Assembly (NCBI GenBank): GCA_020137815.1
Contig: CM035350.1
Span: 9,734,001-9,798,000 of the forward strand
DNA from: Hormiphora californensis
Lineage: Eukaryota; Animalia; Ctenophora
Direction of reading: 5' to 3'
DNA: 64,000 bases
Shown here: piece after piece, positions 41,938 through 63,497 of the stretch
How positions within the stretch are numbered: position 1 is the first letter of the stretch
How the letters are laid out: every line of letters begins with the position of its first letter
Made by a program: the position numbers and the translations under genes
The notes under the pieces: generated by a model
Told to the model about the DNA's origin: nothing
The model's input: the letters and a program-made list of their open reading frames with translations, nothing else
Database searches by the model: none

Positions 41938-44900
41938 TCAATGAGTTCTATTGTTGACTGCCTCTGGAGAGAGTTCCATCCTGAGGTCGCCCAGTCCCTC
42001 AAGGCCACGCTGGAACACCTCCATCCCTTCTTTAGCTTCAACAGGTCGTCCAGTCACTCGAGATTGCTTTATCCGATACAAACCTGATACAAAGGAGATA
42101 ATCACGACACTGAATAACTTTTCATTAATACTCCGTTTAGTACTGCAGAATGAAACTTAACGAGAACTATATATTTATTACCTATTGCGAGTAGTCTGTT
42201 GTTTTCGTCCAAGTCTCTGACAGCTTCCCGATTGATCAGCTTCATTCTAGCGGATCTGAGTTTAGTTCTTCCCTCTTCTACCAAGGATATTCCAGCATTG
42301 ACTTCCTCAAATCTGTCCACCTCCATACCCGTCTTGATCCTCTTTGCCCCTAGAAGTAGTAGTAGTAGTTGCATATTAGCTGTTAGGTCTCACTTCACAC
42401 CAACTTAATACCCGGGTATATTAAGAAATAAGACTCTTGAGTACTCTGTCCTGTCGGGACCAAAAACAAGTCTAGAAATAAGACTGTGTAGTTTGCTATG
42501 CTGTCCCTGGGGGATCTGGGCAGGATACAAGTCTGGGCAGATAATTATAGTTTTTAGTAAAATGTCTAAACCACAACACTGATTCCCAGCTCACCTTCAG
42601 TGCACAGGATTTCAGCCTCCTTTATATTCTGTAGCCCTGATTTGTTGAACTCTACAGAGGCAAGAAGACTTATCCCATCTCCTAGAATACCACTACCCGC
42701 AGCCGATTTGTTAGCTTTTGAGGAATAGTGATTGCTGTACCTACAAATATGTGTTAGTTAGTTAGTTTGACATATTATAGAACACACACGTTTTATAAGT
42801 CAAGTTACAAGTTCTTACTTGCCAAGTTAGACTGTTTTTCGCGCGCCCCGAATATAAAATAAAATAAAAGAGTTTGTACAAAACAAGTTCTTACGTAGAG
42901 AATCCCTCCTTGTATGCAGCGGATAGACCATCAGTAATGGGAACAGAGGCAACATTTCCAGCGCAGTGGAGCTTCACATACTCCCTGACCACCCGGGTAG
43001 ACCTCCTGTGGTCTAGGACCTTCAAGGCATCCAGGTCAGTGGGTGGTGGCCTGTAGTATAGACACAGCATCACCTCGACCATCCTACCCAGGAGACCAAA
43101 CCTCTGGACCCCACCCAGGGCGGTCATTTTAAAGACTCTGTCCCAATAATCCTCCATTGTCTCATTGGACTGTTGCTCTCCAATGTCACTCGTCTGGTAG
43201 AGGTCCCATTCATCCAGTGTTTTGTTGATTGTGTGTCCATGGACTAGCTGGGGTAGACTCTCCACTAGTTCCTTCAAAGTAGCATACTGCGCCTTATCTA
43301 CTCTCTTCACTGCAGAAAAGATGTTGTAACCAGGAACCGACCGACACAAGTAAACAAATAATCAGAACTCGTTATTTAGGTCACGTGATATCAGCCAATC
43401 AGGGACCAGTATTTCCTGATTCGGCCTAGTATGTACCTGGATCAAGTGCCCTGGCTCCCCGTACAACTGGGTCCATGATGGGTAAATTGTCCAGGAGGTA
43501 GCCGAACAAGACAGAGTATGCTGCTCTAACATCGCTGTAGAATAATGTCATCTTCCCGGATGTCACTTCCCTGGTGATTAATGGCGGTATTTAAAACTTG
43601 ATAATCTCTAATCTCTCATGAAAAGTGTAATTGATCAGTTCGTATTTGCTTGATCAATTATATTCAATGAAGATAGCTACAGAAATCATATATTATCTAC
43701 CTAAACAAGGATCCGGGGGGAGCACCGATATTAATCATATCGTCTGGCAGCTGCTGTTCCCTCTCCTCGTATCGAATATGGGCAACCCCGCTCACTGCAC
43801 TAGCCCTTGGCTCAGCTCTTAGAAAACGGCCTAGAGAACAGAATAATATGTATCATGACGTGGGAACCACGTGACAGAGATATATTATAGAGGTGCTAGA
43901 ACTTTTCCAAGCCATGGAAGCTGCATACGTGATACTCATGCTACAACTTGACAAATAGCACATGTCTTCCAATTACCTCCAATGTCCTTAATGAGATGAG
44001 ATATAGAGTTGGAGAGAAGGTGAATTGAGGAGCCCTCAACGCCAATGGAGGAATCAATGAAATCCTCCAGACTCTGCCCAACGCTCCGAAGGAAGGTCAC
44101 CCTCAGAAGGGTCAGGGGAGAAATGAGGGTGTTATAAATCCTCTGGAACCGAGGGACTTTCTTCACCCCTCGCTCTGAGCCATGCACATATATTGTAAAG
44201 TACTTCACCAGGCAGGGCCAGTTTGCTAGGATATCGGCAAAGGACTTGGCTAGTCCGAGTGAGTGCCTGGGGCAAAGTATTAAAGTCAATGCGAGGTTAT
44301 GTTCTTGCTATTTTTGACCCTTTTCCACAAAAATCTGTCTTCGCTGACCGCAACGAGAAAGACTCGAGCAAGGCAAAATGTTGGATTATGCGAGGGTTAA
44401 CAAAAAACTGTGCATTTTTAGTCAAGTGATATCAAATAAATAATGCAATAGGTACATCTAAAGCTGCTACAGCTGCACTGACCGGTAATTGAGGGCATCA
44501 TTTATCCGATAAAATGAGCTCGTACTGGTATCACCTGGGGCGGTGTTCCGGGAAAATCTCTCACTCTGATGTCCCAGATCCTCATTGGCAAATACCTCTA
44601 CTAGCGACAAAAAGGGGGTATCTGGAGTGCGGCAGGTCTTGAACCAGCACTGCAGGTCATATACTAGGTCCTCCATGCCCCAGTCTGATACAACGTGCAG
44701 GAACTGTGGTTGAGGACGGTGACATGAGGAGGGGGGTTAGGAGGGGGATGAGGAGGGGTTGAGGAGGGGGTGATGAGATAATCAAAATGAGATATGCAAC
44801 AGCTCTTGCAGGATAACTCAAATAGAGAGTTCCATGTCCAAATACCTTACTGTAAGCGTGGTAGATGACATTTTCATTGAATGGTAGGGTCTCAATGAAG

Positions 44901-47900
44901 GGTAGACCCCCCTTGCTCTGGACCTCCTCCTCCAACCCTCTGAACACCTCCAGATCACCGCCAGTACGGTGTGACGTCACATACACTAAGTACTTCATGG
45001 GCAGACCCACGTTGTTCACCGCTTCAGAACACTTCCGGAGGGCAAACCCTGAGTCATATCGTTTGATGCTGTGACTTGCTATCATAATGTTCGCCACTCT
45101 TCCACCGATATCATGCCAAAACCTATAGAAAACTTGTTGAGTAAGAAACAATAGAAAACAAGAGCGTAAACACTGAATATAACATGTTCAGCTCGAGTAG
45201 TAGACCCTACGATCAATCACTTGTTATTATATGCCGACATATGATATGATTCTTAAATCAAACAGATGAGGCCGTGGGAGGTTTCACTGCAAGCGTTATA
45301 CCTTGCATAGATATCTAACGAGCGCTTTCCAAACTCATTGATGAATTCTTCGTAATGTAGAATCCAAAAGTTATTGTTCTCCCCATATAACGGCTTCAAA
45401 ACTTGCTGAAAGATGGTATTGGTTTGAATCTTATCCTAGTTAGGGTTAGGGATAATTGGGTTATGGACCACTATTGGAGAAGATTTTTGGTATAAAAACC
45501 TATGGATCATGGTGTTTCCACTAATATCAACGTGTAAAAACCTCATGATCAATACTCAACAAACCTGTAGTATGTGAGGTGTAATTCCTTTGTTGATCTC
45601 ATAGCGAACTTTACTGCGACCCAATACCACTTGTTTGGCTACTTTAGAGTCCACAAACATGTTCGAAAACAATTCTAAAATAAAACAATACAATAGTATT
45701 ACTTCTTGATTTCTTACTTCTCGTGTAATAGTTAGTGGAGTATTTTTGATTTGATCATGATATTATATACTACAGTCGGACCCCGATTTAGTGGCATCCT
45801 CGGGGGAAAAATCCTGCCACTAAATCGGGGTGCCACTAAATCGGGGTTCAAATAATGTTAATTTCCTACATCGGGGGAAAAAATCCTGCCACTAAATCGG
45901 GGCGCCACTAAATCGGGGCGCCTTAATTAAGTTAATTTCTGTGATGTACTATATCGTCACAATATGTGTTCCCAACTCACCAGCTACATTAGCGGTGTGG
46001 TAAGGGTACCCAGAGTTGGCGACATGCAGGCACCACAAGATCTCAGCCCGCTCCTGAAGGTTTGTCTTGGAGACACTGCTCGCTAGCTGATCTCTACTTC
46101 CCAGCCTTCCCTCTGTTTGGAGAATGGGTATTTTAGTAAGAGAGATAGTTGGGGTACTCTTCTGATCAGGCACAATGGGGGAAACAGTCGTGCCTGAAAC
46201 TTTGGGTCGCCTGACACTGTGTTCGTATGAACAACTCAACTGAAACTCAGGTTCAGGTCACGCGGCTTATTAGTAATATTAGTATTTACCCCTGAGATCT
46301 GAGATTTCAGGGTGTCCTCCACGAACAGTACTAAACTTTTAGATCTCGACTAATTAGGCCTTTTGAGTGTGAAAATTGGAGAGCTCTATCGATTTCGTCC
46401 ACGAACTACAGAATTAGTGTTGGTTTTTTGTGCTTTGAGTAGGGTTTTAGAGAGGGATTAGTTCCATACTAAAACCCCCTCCACGTGGTACAAGTCACGT
46501 GATTTCACGCCCCATTTCACACTGAACCCATTTAAGCCCCACTAACCTAGCACTAAAATTTCGACTAAACATTCTGAGAATTTAGCCAACCCAAAGGCTG
46601 TCTAAATTGAAACTAAATTTTACTATTGTGGAAATGCGTACCCAAAACGACCCCAAAATGACTCAAAATTGCCAAAATGGCCACGTTTGTCTTTGACACA
46701 CATGCTTACATGATGAACTTGAGATATTGAAATTGTTTAAATTGAAAAAATCATTTTAAAGGAACGAGATAAGAGGGAGAGAGAGAATTCCTTATGTACA
46801 TATCCCAGAAATATGAGAGGATGTATGAAAGAGTATAATTAGACAGTACTTCTCAAGATATGTACTAGGGGGCCAAAATGAAATATTATATTGGATAGAA
46901 TTGCCTGTATTATGTTTAACTAGCAAAATCATAGCAAAAGTATCAAAAGTAACTGTAAGTACATACCTATCTCTCTTATAATAGTCTCTCTCTCTCCTTC
47001 TCTTTCATTAGTCATTCCCCTCTCATTCCCCTCTCTCCCAATCTCAGTCCCCCCTCTCATTCTCCCCTCTCATTCCCTCTTCTCTCCCAATCTCATTCCC
47101 ATCTCTCATTCCCCCTCTCATTCCCCCTCCCATTCCCACTATATCCCAATCTCTCACTCCACCGCTCATTATCCCCCTCTCACCCCCTCTCATTCCCCCT
47201 CTAATTCCCCCTCTCATTCTCCCTCTTTCCCAAACTCATTCCCATATCTCATTCTCCATCTCTTAACTCTTTCCCTCCTATCTCCCAATCTCTCATTCCC
47301 GGTTCCCCCTTTCATTATGCCCCTCTCGTTATCCCCCTCTCAGGTGTGGCACTGGCTATTAATTATCGCACATTGAGAATCAAGTGTCCTGATTGGCCAG
47401 TGGATCTCTATCTCAATTCACACATTACGTTCCACGTTATTGTATGTCACGCTGATATCATCACGTGATGGAAAAGAGAGAGTGCCCATTGGGTGTCGCA
47501 TTCTATCACATGTATAACACCTCAGTATCACGTGGGTCGGATCAAGCCCCGAAACATGTTGTTCGTGGACGGTTTTCTAAAGTTTAGCGAAATATTAGTC
47601 GCTCACTAACTTGACTTCTAAATTTCAACACTAAACTGAATTTAGTTTCGTGGAGGACACCCAGGGGTAAATAGCCGTGACCTGAACCTGAGATTCAGGC
47701 ACGACTGTTTTTCCCCACAACTGAATACAATCAGCTAAGGATCAGTAGAGGTAAAGGAAAAAACCGTACCCTTGGGGGGGGGGGGCGAACTGAACAAAAA
47801 GCAAGCTATCTCAAGCAAACCTTTTTTGAAGCTGGTTATAAACTGGTGAGTTTCAAGTTCACTGTGTGCTAGGAGAGCCTCCACACCTTCCTTTCTCACA

Positions 47901-48127
47901 CTGATGTAGCACTGGCAGAACTCGCAGAAGGCTTCCTCCATGGTCCTCCCTCTGGACACCCACCTGGAAAGTAAACAACCAATTAGAACTCGTTATTTAG
48001 GTCACGTGACTGGTTATTAGCCAATCAGGGGCCAGTATTTCATGGTCCTCCCTCTGGACACCCACCACAACTGCTCGTACTGGGACTTCCACCCCGGGTC
48101 ATACACCAACCCTCCACGGGCAGACAT
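41938..48127 (-). CDS. Domesticated hAT-transposase-derived gene with an N-terminal BED-like zinc finger, ~12 exons
   Basis: W..AFCEFC..H..H; AEILWCLHV; LFSNMFVDSKVA...GRSKVRY.I.KGI.P; YRFW; W.CL..YF; LP......ALDP; EDYWDRV..G..RF..L. All are joined by canonical introns. Confidence 0.75.
43331..43425 (-). mobile_element. Family A MITE occupying most of a ~125-bp intron
   Basis: Core sequence lies between the donor near 43436 and the acceptor near 43312. Confidence 0.8.
46178..47717. mobile_element. Non-autonomous DNA element with long imperfect TIRs, in an intron
   Basis: ggggaaacagtcgtgcctgaa / ctcaggttcaggtcacg / gggtgtcctccacgaa are mirrored at 47648-47717; TSD unresolved. Confidence 0.65.
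47964..48065 (-). other. 102-nt intron built from an exon duplication plus a family A MITE core
   Basis: 26-bp direct repeat at 47939-47964 and 48041-48066; GT..AG removal restores the reading frame. Confidence 0.8.
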
Positions 48128-49247
48128 GACGATCTGCAGAGAGTGAGGGGATCATGTGAGAGTGAGGGGATCATGTGTTTAAAATAGTGAGGGGGGGGGG
48201 TAGGGTCATAAACCAACCCTCCACGGGCAGACATGACTCTGCAGAGTGATGTGTTTCAAATAGTGATGGGGGGCAGACATGACACTGCAGAGAGAGTGAG
48301 GGGATCATGTGAGAGTGAGGGGACATGTGTTTCAAATAGTGAGGGGGGATGTGTTTCAAATAGTTGGGGGGATGTTTCAAAAAACCAACCCTCCACGGGC
48401 AGACATGAAACTGCAGAGTGTGAGGGCATCATGTGTTTCAAATAGTGAGGGGGGAGACATGACTGCAGGGTGTGAGGGGATGTGTTTCAAATAGTGAGGG
48501 GAGGGATGTTTCAAATAGTGATGGGGGGAGGGATGTTTCAAATAGTGAGGGAGGAGAGATGTTTCAAATAGTGAGGGGGGATGTTTCAAATAGTTACTAA
48601 TCATATATCATAACTATATATCATAATTGTGGTCTGCAAATAAAAGAAAGATGCGACGTTGCAATTGTCACTGCATGTGAAACTACTAAATTAACAGCGA
48701 GACGGTGGACACGGTTGGTTTAACCCAAGTCACAACAAAAGAAGCAAATTAGAAATCAAGAGAAGTATACTGGGTCAAGCAGGAGAACTACATCAATGTG
48801 TGTAATATAACGTGTGGCCAAGGTTATAAGCTGCTGCCTCAAGAATTATACCGTGTACATGTGTAACATGTCTCTTTTCTTTAGATCTCACTTGACCTCT
48901 GCAGATCGACCTGATGAATATATGCCAAATTAAAGTCACTCAAAAACAGATCAAGTTTAACCACGGGTCAGATAGGCAGCTGATATACTCGACGTGATAA
49001 ACATCTCTCGATATCAGTATCATGACCGACCCCCCTGTTAACCAGATAAAGGAAGCTTGCCAGGTGACAAACACAGATCGGTATAGTAGAGACATTGACC
49101 ATATAGGCAGATAGATAGAGAGAGAGATAGATAGAGTGATATATATAGAGAGAGAGAGAGAGAGAGTCGAGAGAGAAAGAGATAGAGAGGGAGGGAGAGA
49201 GAGAGAGAGAGAACGATAGAGAGGGAGAACGATAGATAGAGAGAACG

Positions 49248-49555: not shown

Positions 49556-49664
49556 CAGGAACCGACCGAATCAGGAAATACTGGTCCCTGATTGGCTGAT
49601 AACCAGTCACGTGACCTAAATAACGAGTTCTGATTGGTTGTTTACTTGGTTCGGTCGGTTCCTG
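49556..49664 (+). mobile_element. Family A hAT MITE, intact
   Basis: Perfect TIRs and a perfect 8-bp TSD gtttccag. Confidence 0.95.
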
Positions 49665-50329: not shown

Positions 50330-51536
50330 ATGGAGGTGAGTCATGTGTGTGTGATGGAGGTGAGTCATGTGTGTGTGTTTAGAGCTTGCGTCGCTAAGAT
50401 CAAGAAAAATAGAAGGTGCGGACCCTCAAATGATTGAGGCCTCAATCATTTGGAGACTGCTATTCTTCTTTTAAATAGTACATTTCTTATCAGGGTCATG
50501 ATAACGGAGATGCAGGTTTAGAGGCCTTGGAGAGAGTCCAGGCACTGGAGCACAGGGTAGATGAGATTGAGACTGTCCTGGAAGTAAGGGCCAACCCTCA
50601 GGAACGATCCGGTAGACCAAGAAGCGCTGGATACTCCTTCTTCTCATCGGTCAGTGCAGCTATAATACCATCGTTCTGCAGTATACTGCAATTCTTTGTG
50701 TTTTGTTGAATTGTAAATTTCTTCGTCGCGTAGCAGCCTTGTCCAATTCCTCCAATTCATTTCAGTTCCAAACGGGACTCTGCAACGGTTTCACACTGTG
50801 TCCCTGTTTGTCGAGACAGCACGAGCCGGACTCCCCACCACCGCCAACTATTGTAGCTGAACCCCCACGGGAACCAACCCCTGAACCAAGTGAGCCCTAT
50901 CACGAGGAGCCAGAGGAGCCATCCTATCGGACCGAGGACTATCCAGTTGAGAACTCAGAGCCCTTCCACTCAGAGGAACCCGACCAGAGACCCGGCAAAA
51001 AGAAAGGATTCTTTTCGAAGATGGGCGCTAAGGGGAACAGAAGGAAATCAGAAATGAGGGAGCCTGGACCGGTTCAGCCAGCACCTGCACCTGCACAACA
51101 CCACGAACCTGCACCACAGGAGCAGCGAGGGGGCCAGAGTGTCCCCCGAGGACAGCCAGCCCCAGTTAGGGGTGGGGTGGTGCCGGGTCGGGGTGCTGGA
51201 GGGAGGGGTGGAGCAACCCAGCCTAGAGCAGCAGTGCCAGCAGCTCCGGGGGGAGGGAGAGGAGCAGCCCCAGGTAGAGGGGGAGCAGTGGCACCTGGAG
51301 GGACTAGTAGAGGGGGAGCAGTGGCACCTGGAGGGACTAGCAGAGGTGGTCAGACCCAAGGTCGGGGTGGTCAAACCCAAAGTCGGGGTGGCCAGACCCC
51401 AGGTCGGGGTGGCCAGGCCCAAGGTCGGGGTGCCCAGACCCAAGGTCGGGGTGGTCAGGCCCAAAGAGGAGCTGTTCAGGGTGGTCAGGGTGTTCAGGGA
51501 GGAAGAGCTGTAAACAGAACAGTAGCAGACTACTAA
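50330..51536 (+). CDS. Unknown protein: short coiled coil + Pro/Glu region + RGG-rich tail (3 exons)
   Basis: ATG GAG|gtgagt; exon 50494-50649 (LERVQALEHRVDEIE); exon ~50820-51536 with GRGGQTQ repeats. Confidence 0.65.
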
Positions 51537-53151: not shown

Positions 53152-55724
53152 ATGGGAAAAAGTAAAAAGAGGTAGGTAACAAGTAAACTCCTTGGTGACA
53201 TAGACACCTGGCGCGACCCCCGCACCAGGTGTCTATATCTCACCAAGTTAAATCCTTGCTCCTCTAGTTTGTTGATTTGCTTGTAAGAGATGCTCTACAA
53301 GAGTTGACCGGCTGTAACCCCTTTGTTTTCAGTGAAGGTGGTGGATCGGTACCACCCCCTCCCGAAGAGGGGGCTGGAGGGGACCCTGCTGCTGCCCCTC
53401 CTCCTGCTGAAGACCACCAGATCTCAGCGACAGTTGAACACCACGAGGAACACCACCCGGACCACCACCACCACCACCAGCAGCATAGTGAGAAGCCCAA
53501 GAAACAGAGATATGTGCAGCCCCCGGAGCACAATCTAAAGGTAACAAGCAGAGTCACCATGGTAACAAGCAGAGTCACTGCACTCAACTAGGTCTTTCTT
53601 TGAAATATACATGCACTTTATGTATCTTTATCTGTTGGGTAGCATGATTCTTAGTACAACTTCCTCCCTGCAGGCGTCTCTAGTTGGTAAGAAGTTGGGG
53701 ATTCCTATTGTAGACGTACTGAGGAACCACCACGAGAGGATAGCTCTACTAGAGGAGAAAATCGGTGAGACAAGGATGGATTCAATATCTCGAGGATTCC
53801 TTCAGGGAGACGGGGTAAAGAAGAAAAAGAAGAAGAAGAAAAAGAAGAAGAAAAAGGTGAAAATGAGCCATTTTAGTTGTCAATTAAAAAGTCTCTGAGT
53901 TTGATCTCCCTATAACCCCTTTCTTTTCCAGAGTTCATCTTCTTCATCTTCCTCCTCTTCCTCCTCTTCATCGAGTAGTTCCAGTAGTTCCAGCAGTTCT
54001 TCCTCGGATGACGACCTGCCAAGGAGACATCCGGGAACTATACCCATTGATATCATGGCTGCTGGCATCTCCCGTGAAGAGGTTTGTTATGCGGGACGCG
54101 CGAAACACAGTCTAGCTCTCGTGAAGAGGTTTGCTCCAAGTGTCGTTTCAGCTGCCTCTCAGTTAGAATATAGTATGAAATAAACTACTCAATGTTTATA
54201 CCACCATTCTCTATTGTGCTAATGGACCCCTAACCTCATGTTTTCTTTGCTCCTCAACATGATGGATATTTTCTATAGGTAGCGAGGATGTTTGCGGCAC
54301 AGAACGCTGTTTTCAAGGAGTTACTTCGGGAGCAAAGAAAGTGTTATGACGGGGCCCTCAGCGCCGTAATGAATGAGATCCTCATTGCTCTGGGTGAGAG
54401 TGAGGTGGGAGCTGCCGGGGTCAGGCTGGACAGTCTTGAGGAGAGAGTTGAGTCGTTGGAGAAGAAGGCCCTCACTGAGAGTGTTCAAGTTGTCAAAACT
54501 ATCCCAGCTAGTGGTCCGGCCGATACAGCAGATCCAACGAAGAAGCTACCTAAAATGCCATCTTTTGTAAGTATTGTGGTTATCCAGCTGGACCCCGAGC
54601 ACTGTTTGAGTTCCCTTTCTATCACACCGAGAACCACTCATTAAGGTGGTTTGATGGATGGCTTAGTAAATAACTTGCTCTCATCAGGGGAATCCATTCG
54701 GGAAGAAAGAAGAGGTAGAGGAGCCTGAAGAAGAGAAGAAGGGAGGGCTCTTCGGGGGAGGTGGAGGGGGACTCTTTGGGAAGTGAGTATGGAGACTTAA
54801 CCTTGTTTTGATTGAGCGTGAGAGTAATATTGCTTTGTCTCATGATACCGTCCAGAGAGTTTCAAGCAAGGTAATTATAATACAAGAATTTTATCCTCCT
54901 AGAAAGAAGGAAGAGGAGGAAGAGGAAGGAGGAGGTGGTGGGTTCTTCAAAGTACCGAGTGTCCCCAAAATACCTGGCCGCGGCGGGGGAGCCTCACCGG
55001 AACCATCGGTAACAACCAATCAGAGCTCGTTATTTAGGTCACGTGACTGGTTATCAGCCAATCAGGGACCAGCATTTCCTCTGCAGGTAACATTTAGCAA
55101 GTACAAACGGGACAGGGATCGGAGGAAAAAGGAACGGGAAGAACGATATATGGAAGACTATGAATATTACAGAAAGTAAGTAACATATTGAACTATATTG
55201 TTCTATGACTCATATTGATTCGATAGAACAAAGGATCAATCTAGACTTTATTATAAAGGGGCAGAATCCCCCCGCTGAATACGGTAAACACATCCCCTGC
55301 ATGCTACTCATGGTGTTTTTTAGGCAACGCGACACAAGGAGAACGGACAACGGGAGATCAGAGAGAGGTGCAGGGAGACCGGACAGATCCCCAACGAGCA
55401 CCCAACGGAAATCTAAATCAGGATCTCGGAGAAGAAGGATATCAGATAGGGACCGTGAAAAGTAGGTCCGTGTACTCTGTTGTTCTAACCCTCCCTCTAC
55501 ATTTGTAAAGGTGCGGGGCGCCCGAAACACAGTCTAGCCAGGCAACTTCTCTGTTGTTATAACCCTGATCCGGGGGGGGGGGTGAAACAGGGGTGAAACA
55601 GGGGTGAAACAGGGTGAAACAGGGTCCTCCGGGGACATTAGAAATTAATTGTTTTCTTTTATTTAGATCAGGCACTGCAGTTGGTCGGTCGGGGAAGTAC
55701 GAAGTGAGAAACTTGGATGACTGA
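53152..55724 (+). CDS. Unknown low-complexity/coiled-coil protein, ~9-10 exons
   Basis: Chain of GT-AG exons with His, Lys and Ser tracts, RIALLEEKI and LEERVESLEKK; the first junction is uncertain. Confidence 0.6.
53192..53246. mobile_element. 55-bp Mutator-like MITE, same TIR as the element at 34697
   Basis: ttggtgacatagacacctgg..ccaggtgtctatatctcaccaa; near-matching 9-bp TSD gtaaactcc/gttaaatcc. Confidence 0.7.
55009..55086 (+). other. 78-nt candidate intron consisting of a family A MITE core
   Basis: gtaacaacc...ttcctctgcag, with ggtaaca repeated at both junctions. Confidence 0.7.
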
Positions 55725-57224: not shown

Positions 57225-58443
57225 TTTCGCTAACTATGAAAACTATCACTACTAAAGATAATATACTTGATTAGAATACGAAAACACAAAAGTAACTGAA
57301 CTACAGAAGTACTATAACAGAAAGGAAGTAACATCAATGTAACACAAGGAAGCAACTACAGAAGGCTCAACACATGGGGGGGGGGGGGGTAACTGCAGTG
57401 TTTTTCTACACACCGGTGCTGAATCGGCAGATATACCCGGCCCTCCCGATCAGAGCTGTAGAGCCCCCCTCCATCTTGTTTCCTCTCTCTACACAAATGT
57501 ACAAAGGTCACTCGATGAGCTTGGCAGTGATCTCCCTCCCACCGTCACACACACACACACTTAGCATGAGCCAATCAAGGAAATTTAGAGACTTTTAAAC
57601 AGCTCTAATATCTGCGTAATAATATGTATACCATATGAAAAACATGAAATGTTCAGGAAAGAATTATCGTTCATTCGAGTTCCAGTCTCAATCTCTCCTA
57701 GTAGGAGTCATAACACACAATTTGGTTGTTTACCGTATGCCACAAGTCAGAACTGTAGTATGTGTTGTTTTGTTCGAACAAGGCAAAGTATGTGTATCAT
57801 TTTCTCATTATTTCCTCCTCGTTCCACTTTCAATTAATTACTGAGTAAATTATATTTGCTATAGATCATTATTATAGGGCGTGGGTATTACACGGAAATA
57901 TATCTACAGACAGACAGACAGATATATTGTGTCTTGGACACGATCAAGAGCTACTCACCAGCAAAATACACAATGTGATTGTTGTTACTCAACAACAATG
58001 TGTAGATACACCATCCTCTTTTCAGAAGAAAAGTTGTCATTTTGTTTTCCTCCACAGCTTCCACGAGATCAGCTCTGCCCCCCCCTGGCCCCCCCCGGTG
58101 TCGTAGGGCGATCCCCTCACAGGCTTCCACGAGATCAGCTCTGCCTTTCATTTCTAGAATGTTTTTGGTTTGGTTCGGTGCTCCCAACTGCCCATATATC
58201 ATGTTACTGTAACACGCATAAATGCAATAAGGGTATTATATGCCATCGCGTGACTCTCTAGCTCAACTTGAAATTCAAAAGTCGAAACCCAACGTGTTTC
58301 AACTTTTGGATATACCGTGAGTCATGCTATATAAACAAGCCATCTGATTGCTCATTGTAGCCAGTTGTGTAGTGTGTGTAGTTAATTTGTGTTTGTTTTT
58401 AGTGCTGAACAGGATATTTACCAACTTCAAACAGTATCAGATC

Positions 58444-63497
<5,054 letters not shown>

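Follow-up and report, generated by a model that had tools for sequence, protein, structure and literature searches.

In Daphnia pulex, neointrons have been attributed to the repair of staggered double-strand breaks and carry exon repeats of 4 to 12 bp at both intron ends (PMC4202315). Duplication of an exon segment that contains AGGT was shown experimentally to yield a functional intron (Hellsten et al. 2011, PMC3265369). Introners have defined termini and a short, family-specific target duplication (3 to 9 bp), and they are inserted by transposition (PMC9860276). Finally, when complementary overhangs (43 nt in the study of Schimmel et al. 2021, PMC8355091) are filled in before the ends are joined, small tandem duplications result that measure tens of base pairs.

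Here, we describe a candidate intron from a 64-kb window (the whole stretch of DNA analyzed) of Hormiphora californensis, a ctenophore whose assembly comprises 110 Mb in 44 scaffolds with 13 chromosomes and shows ~3.2% combined SNP and indel heterozygosity (PMC8527503). Like the Daphnia neointrons (Li et al. 2009; Li et al. 2014, PMC4202315), it is a new insertion in an exon; the Daphnia insertions are polymorphic, and contig ends suggest that this one may be as well. It lies within a coding exon of a real gene and is bounded by a perfect 26-bp repeat. The Daphnia repeats measure 4 to 12 bp and the source of their filler is mostly unknown, whereas here the repeat is 26 bp (13 to 77 bp across the class described below) and the filler is an identified, reused, and end-truncated MITE. 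Splicing has been demonstrated for Daphnia neointrons, whereas 47964-48065 is a candidate intron from its sequence.

As in AGGT duplication (Rogers' model), the donor would come from the first copy of the exon segment, and joining it to the matching position in the second would restore the original mRNA exactly. Two other members of the class, in a DUF726 gene (L094) and a cathepsin gene (L077), have AG/GT (slash, splice boundary) within the duplicated segment as that model describes. At our locus the segment supplies G/GT only, and the two splice sites do not both derive from a duplicated AGGT. The intron body of the AGGT model is duplicated exon, whereas here it is foreign MITE DNA, with the acceptor A taken from the filler. 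Introners and MITE-derived introns (Huff et al. 2016; Gozashti et al. 2022, PMC9860276; PMC12130899; PMC11282704) resemble the locus in that a nonautonomous DNA transposon is the candidate intron body and the duplicated target helps supply the splice sites. Unlike introners, the copies studied here have lost their termini at variable points and sit in long, variable duplications. The introner papers that we consulted make no mention of ctenophores. The breaks of Schimmel et al. were made by a Cas9 nickase and were mostly repaired without long foreign filler, whereas ours would be natural breaks holding a transposon fragment of 52 to 102 bp.

What is novel against these precedents is the length and variability of the duplication, the identified and reused MITE filler, and the loss of the terminal inverted repeats (TIRs); the repair route itself has precedents. 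An earlier note on this DNA had proposed a distinct repair- or template-switch-based route. The structural part of that proposal stands (TIR loss and a 26-bp duplication) and extends to a recurrent class with microhomology at the junctions, but the route is less novel than the note supposed, given the Daphnia and AGGT precedents.

RESULTS

A truncated MITE core lies between two copies of an exon segment

A repeat search of the window found a perfect direct repeat of 26 nt (100% identity) at 47939-47964 and 48041-48066, with a spacing of 102 nt. The 76 nt between the copies (47965-48040) are the core of an abundant hAT-type MITE. The features of the locus are as follows.

48041 to 48066, minus strand: 26-bp target duplication, upstream copy in gene direction; donor candidate G/GTGGGT, first intron base 48065
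47965 to 48040, minus strand: MITE-core insert, 76 bp, TIR-less; holds CTAAT, a pyrimidine tract, and the acceptor A
47939 to 47964, minus strand: 26-bp duplication, downstream copy; begins at 47964 with the base that completes the acceptor AG (G)
47964 to 48065, minus strand: candidate intron, 102 nt, GT..AG; its removal restores the empty-site frame exactly

The complete MITE is 109 bp long and has 15-bp TIRs (CAGGAACCGACCGAA and TTCGGTCGGTTCCTG). Consistent with the hAT superfamily, a target duplication of exactly 8 bp flanks 35 of the 46 complete copies scored. The window holds a copy that served as the reference.

49556 to 49664, plus strand: complete reference MITE, 109 bp, both TIRs, 8-bp duplication GTTTCCAG

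The core repeat occurs nine times in the window versus zero times in shuffles, and a 29-mer of the core has 3114 places in the 110.7-Mb genome at one mismatch or fewer. The local density (9 copies per 64 kb) compares with a genome mean of ~1 per 35 kb. The family is also found in contigs of organism B, at very high depth. In the core consensus (49576-49650), two CCAAT-box-like TGATTGG motifs lie on either side of a perfect palindrome, GTCACGTGAC (E-box).

When aligned locally with the full-length MITE, the insert matched positions ~16-92 of 109 only, and alignment to complete copies confirmed that both TIRs are missing from 47965-48040. The MITE derivation of the last 4 nt of the insert (TCCA) is not clear. 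A canonical hAT MITE insertion has TIRs at both ends and an 8-bp target-site duplication. Because the TIRs are missing and the duplication is 26 bp rather than 8 bp, the insertion at 47939-48066 is not canonical transposition. The structural reading, a truncated MITE core within a long duplication, is secure. The description in the earlier note, 26 bp of coding sequence doubled around a TIR-less MITE core, was borne out, with the core measuring 76 bp against the ~70 bp given there. We also considered whether the 26-mer is itself a decayed TIR and rejected this; ~8 of 15 positions are alike, which amounts at most to microhomology.

Two variants of the insert are common to just three genome copies, namely, the insert itself, a complete MITE on contig 11, and another long-duplication insertion on contig 6. 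It follows that the variants were already present in a source subfamily and did not arise after insertion. The contig 6 member (L193, ~7741136-7741211) lies in a repeat of ~18-20 bp (GTAATTATACAGTGTCAG) and has kept its right TIR and lost its left TIR.

The insertion interrupts a predicted hAT-derived gene

The exons read around the insertion are listed in gene order.

48066 to 48127, minus strand: first coding segment, ATG at 48125-48127 (MSARGGLVYDPGWKSQYEQLW); preceded by an acceptor-like ctgcag at 48134-48139
47821 to 47963, minus strand: second coding segment (WVSRGRTMEEAFCEFCQCY...FKK); zinc-finger-like Cys-x2-Cys...His-x5-His; donor AAG/GTTTGC at 47819-47820
45981 to 46112, minus strand: next exon; acceptor cag at 46113-46115, donor GTGAGT from 45980
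45565 to 45674, minus strand: exon (ELFSNMFVDSKVAKQ...); canonical GT-AG, phase-consistent
45302 to 45405, minus strand: exon (QVLKPLYGENNNFWILHYEEF...); canonical GT-AG, phase-consistent
44657 to 45122, minus strand: exon region (RFWHDIGGRVANIMIASH...); putative RNase-H-like part of a hAT-derived ZMYM1/FAM200-like protein; single copy

Without the 102-nt unit, the first exon is 205 nt (62 + 143) and ends in phase 1, which matches the exon at 45981-46112. By phase arithmetic from the sequence, five successive canonical GT-AG junctions are phase-consistent solely in the proposed frame. The empty-site frame is open from 48151, with the ATG at 48127, and the host exon ORFs have one copy in the genome.

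The second coding segment has a weak zf-U1 match in Pfam (E 0.002). Searched exon by exon, no host ORF had a significant Pfam match (E<=1), and none matched a DUF4371 or FAM200 RNase-like profile. A phmmer search of the whole library returned two short fragment homologues with 52 to 57% identity from ENA metagenome contigs, one of which (P0001) sits on a 32-kb ENA contig; the same search also matched a repeat protein (DUF7507) whose relation to the host gene is not evident. A protein homology search with the exon-2 ORF found no homologous protein. Among metagenome contigs, an exact 34-mer had no match and a search for related loci found no relative. As a lead only, a protein language-model atlas gave ZMYM1/FAM200/DUF4371 look-alikes at a score of 0.85. 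Proteins of the ZMYM1/FAM200/DUF4371 family are hAT-derived. We take the motifs MFVDSKVAK and RFWHD of the host protein to be compatible with this family, and GWKSQYEQLWWV...AFCEFC presumably shows the spacing of a TTF-type zinc finger, W..Y..W(L/V)-x9-FC-x2-C. Taken together, these features show that the host is a real gene, with several exons and a single copy, and it probably derives from a hAT transposase of the ZMYM1/FAM200-like type. The insertion therefore interrupts coding sequence, in a zinc-finger-like N-terminal segment.

Repeats surround this exon. Just upstream, a tandem-repeat block at 48103-48600 holds three more copies of a segment that comprises the acceptor-like ctgcag, the ATG, and the initial ~30 nt of the ORF.

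48103-48141, 48210-48248, 48382-48420, and, weaker, 48256-48294: copies of repeat family D4; the exon start is duplicated repeatedly

The first host intron carries another high-copy repeat (47263-47742), which occurs in organism B too. Contig depth over it was thousands-fold in sequencing runs X1 and X5 versus ~50 on the flanking exon.

The 102-nt unit has the signals of an intron and can be removed exactly

With the unit kept, the minus-strand translation runs ...YEQLWWVSRGRTM, then KYWPLIG, and then meets an in-frame TAA at 48019-48017. With the unit removed (48065 to 47964, GTGGGT...TTTCCAG), the frame continues as ...YEQLW-WVSRGRTMEEAFCEFC, and the continuous empty-site reading of the first exon is ...YEQLWWVSRGRTMEE... 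The removable unit reads GTGGGT...CTAAT...TTGTTTACTTTCCAG. Its branch-point candidate (CTAAT at 47982-47986, A at 47983) is supplied by the insert, as is the pyrimidine tract, TTGTTTACTTTCC. The duplication begins with GGT and the insert finishes in A, which together make the acceptor CAG/G. Thus, donor, branch candidate, pyrimidine tract, and acceptor are all there, in the right order and with the right spacing. The donor GTGGGT is of moderate strength only, and at 102 nt the candidate intron is shorter than three neighboring introns (110, 159, and 179 nt).

These results agree with the earlier note that the upstream copy holds the donor on the minus strand (G/GTGGGT within 48041-48066) and that removal of 102 nt gives a continuous frame while retention leads to TAA. 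The note had also assigned the acceptor to the insert, which is correct for the A but not for the G, with which the second repeat copy begins. Judged by these signals, 47964-48065 is a plausible candidate for a nascent intron, at roughly even odds. The step from exactly removable to actually removed is one that we infer.

Contig ends point to a recent insertion with an empty allele

Contigs from public DNA runs were mapped to the region and read by their ends. In run X1, a 90-nt contig stops exactly at 48041. A second X1 contig covers 47713-47964, derives from a divergent haplotype with indels at 47784-47806, and carries 4 extra letters past 47964 that are unmatched to the filled reference. 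In run X5, which is from another sample, a contig stops exactly at 47964. In a simulated k=31 de Bruijn graph, for which the sampled MITE copies served as background, the filled allele by itself gave unitigs that extended 29 to 34 nt into the core, while with filled and empty alleles they stopped exactly at 48041 and 47964. The 4-letter overhang equals the k=31 prediction for a contig that follows the empty allele, by reasoning outside the simulation. Among the contigs mapped to the region, none was seen to span an empty site.

From the contig ends, the insertion looks recent and polymorphic, and filled and empty alleles both appear to be present in the sequenced samples. The phrase "caught in the act" in the earlier note is upheld as to recent age, by the identical repeats and the contig ends, and as to age only. 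In a heterozygote, a test by junction reads at 47964/48065 is confounded because the empty allele gives an identical exon 1-2 mRNA.

End-truncated MITE fragments in long duplications form a recurrent class

An unselected sample of ~115 MITE copies was drawn from the genome places of the core 29-mer (the first 100), together with the copies in the window and a few other loci. Both TIRs were present in 66 copies, one in 21, and neither in 28. Complete copies have flanking repeats of ~8-10 bp, while direct repeats of 13 to 60+ bp flank 7 of the 21 copies with one TIR and 17 of the 28 with neither (15 to 60+ bp in these 17). After removal of one double-counted locus, the unselected set held 23 end-truncated cases with long duplications. 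A pattern that excludes the left TIR has 114 places genome-wide; the 92 that we examined as an enriched sample gave 33 further cases, for a total of 56.

Across the 56 cases, duplications are 13 to 77 bp long (median, 26.5) and inserts 52 to 102 bp (median, 77). Divergence between the two repeat copies is 3.6% of sites, with 17 perfect pairs among the 56. This spread of divergence implies events of varied age, with our locus among the youngest. The element starts at reference positions 0-28 and ends at 82-109, and the constant termini and constant short target duplication of an introner were not found across the 56 cases. End-truncated MITE fragments in long duplications are therefore a recurrent class in the H. 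californensis genome. The earlier note had suggested scanning the genome for introns made mainly of this core between exon duplications; dozens of similar insertions were found. Extrapolating 23 of 115 to 3114 copies gives an estimate of several hundred such events genome-wide.

Two other explanations for the class were tried and set aside. An independent mobile core element or LINE-mediated retroposition was rejected, since both ends vary rather than the 5' end alone and a tail is absent. The idea that selection favors multiples of three for the length of insert plus repeat was rejected as well, 8 of 23 being the chance level.

The window contains further structures of this general kind. At 62437-62588 (minus strand), a second TIR-less core lies in a 41-bp duplication with 1 mismatch; the unit is 111 nt, there is no exactly removable GT..AG on either strand, and 146 codons are open on the plus strand across the empty site. 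A third TIR-less core, at 55002-55093, has a flanking repeat of just 6 to 7 nt (GGTAAC) and reads, on the plus strand, GTAACA...CTGCAG/GTAAC, which is intron-like. Isolated two-copy direct repeats of 23 bp at 51351-51457 and 58057-58145 (spacing, 84 and 66 nt) have fillers other than the MITE. Repair in the H. californensis genome may in general leave a duplication with filler.

Junction anatomy fits break repair with a MITE filler

Among the unselected cases, truncation points at an end without a TIR fall within positions 8-28 (left end) or 82-102 (right end). They cluster at the inner TIR edges (15 and 94), and none lies deeper, though the anchor permitted it. Microhomology is frequent at the junctions: an overlap of at least 2 nt between duplicated segment and MITE was found on the left in 30 of 56 cases (complete copies, 11 of 52) and on the right in 24 of 56 (complete copies, 14 of 52). 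This anatomy fits two models, capture of an excised, end-trimmed element or copying of the single-stranded loop of a folded element; in either, microhomology would join the fragment into a break whose long overhangs are then filled in. Junction anatomy does not distinguish between them, and the type of break is likewise read from the junctions alone.

From this anatomy we infer a repair mechanism at the locus. A staggered chromosome break would have occurred in the first coding exon of the hAT-derived (ZMYM1/FAM200-like) host gene and would have been repaired with a MITE piece placed between its ends. Both 26-nt overhangs would have been filled in, doubling the exon segment on either side of the insert. 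The filler would be the inter-TIR part of a 109-bp hAT MITE from a small subfamily whose sole complete member found is on contig 11. It may be a captured piece of an excised element with trimmed ends or a copy of the loop that is left single-stranded when the element folds, and it would have been joined via short microhomologies. The event would be recent, with the empty allele apparently still in the sequenced samples, and splicing would take out exactly the insert and one repeat copy.

Exact removability in other genes

Having defined the class, we scored each case for removability, which requires that the upstream repeat copy contain a GT and that an AG precede the matching position in the downstream one. 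An exactly removable GT..AG was found on 18 of 112 strands overall versus 7 of the 20 strands on which a long frame stays open over the empty site, a weak enrichment on coding-looking strands.

Two insertions split recognizable genes on contig 2. Near 331.7 kb (L094), the insertion splits a DUF726/TMCO4-like exon, with Pfam DUF726 positions 4-78 upstream and 77-260 downstream; AGGTTAGTAAGTTG is duplicated, and a GT..AG unit of 86 nt can be removed exactly. Near 571.4 kb (L077/L185), a cathepsin is split at ...QGSCGSCWAF...AYAIQT/GDVV..., with Peptidase_C1 positions 1-43 upstream and 40-187 downstream. Here the unit is 94 nt (CAG/GTAAAC...AACAG/GT), and 335 codons are open after its removal. 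Because these unit lengths are not divisible by three, both genes are broken on the examined haplotype unless the units are spliced. The mid-exon insertions with homology or gene-model support are exactly removable in 3 of 3 cases versus a background of ~16% per strand, a small sample that is suggestive of intron formation.

Other insertions (L111 and L062/L191) lie on existing exon-intron borders and would be harmless. In L111 (contig 4, near 1914.8 kb), the duplicated segment spans the 3' end of an EGF/LDL-receptor-like exon, and in L191 (contig 1, near 9820.5 kb), it spans the ctgcag acceptor of an attractin/Kelch-like exon. Each of the two duplicates a splice site because the duplicated segment spans an exon-intron border.

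The host gene was not found as RNA among the sequencing runs listed. In run X13, which is possibly RNA, the sole contig touching the region matches the MITE core only. This contig, of 1374 nt, has a different, TIR-bearing MITE copy in its interior. Either MITE copies may occur in transcripts or X13 may contain DNA.

DISCUSSION

We consider moderately probable the account as a whole, in which a staggered break was recently repaired with a MITE filler and the resulting unit, being exactly removable, is removed by splicing. The same origin by repair could also have left an unspliced, recent loss-of-function allele, with a premature TAA and likely nonsense-mediated decay, that is either carried in the heterozygous state, in a population of very high heterozygosity, or tolerated because a transposase-derived gene is dispensable. 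Several observations lean that way: the MITE core was all that possible RNA run X13 matched, the empty allele seems to coexist and would permit a heterozygous null, and the identical repeat copies speak for a young event with little time for selection. The chance rate of exact removability is also appreciable, as the 18 of 112 strands show. Set against them are the 3 of 3 supported mid-exon insertions that are exactly removable versus ~16% per strand, albeit in a small sample, and a donor, branch candidate, pyrimidine tract, and acceptor that are rightly ordered and spaced. We regard an unspliced allele as somewhat unlikely.

The insertion would be neutral for the protein if translation began downstream of it. 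The downstream repeat copy closes with ACCATGG, and its Kozak-like ATG at 47940-47942 could serve as the start, so that the insert would merely lengthen the leader and add a 9-codon upstream ORF (MKYWPLIG-stop). The upstream copy and insert do read ATG AAA TAC TGG CCC CTG ATT GGC TAA, and the true N terminus is uncertain in that the 5' end of the upstream segment falls within tandem repeat family D4. However, the frame is open from 48151 with its ATG at 48127 directly after an acceptor-like ctgcag, and the zinc-finger spacing that we presume in GWKSQYEQLWWV...AFCEFC argues that the upstream part is coding; a downstream start is accordingly improbable. Transposon filler flanked by a direct repeat also recalls an ordinary, introner-like insertion with its target-site duplication, or else an artifact of assembly. 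An ordinary transposon is contradicted by the absence of TIRs, by 26 bp in place of the family's 8 bp, and by the census of the class, in which ends and duplication lengths vary. An artifact would have to explain dozens of independent loci with the same anatomy and short-read contigs from two samples that break exactly at the repeat edges, as expected for filled and empty alleles. Both of these we consider very improbable.

We therefore return to repair of a staggered break with a MITE filler that is then spliced. A broader claim, which we advance tentatively and at clearly less than even odds, is that this would be an ongoing, transposase-independent route in which the MITE loop has entered staggered breaks several hundred times and exonic copies persist as exactly spliceable introns.

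Whether introns arise by transposon insertion, break repair, or exon duplication is debated, and the locus and its class combine all three. The duplicated exon gives the donor, and the transposon fragment gives length, branch site, and pyrimidine tract. With the source family, the duplication, and probably both alleles still visible, the process can be dated and counted genome-wide. If splicing is true, the system would be the first of its kind in a ctenophore, and abundant MITEs would seed introns without transposing. If the ongoing route is true as well, an early-branching animal would have a source of new introns that is still active and can be dated.
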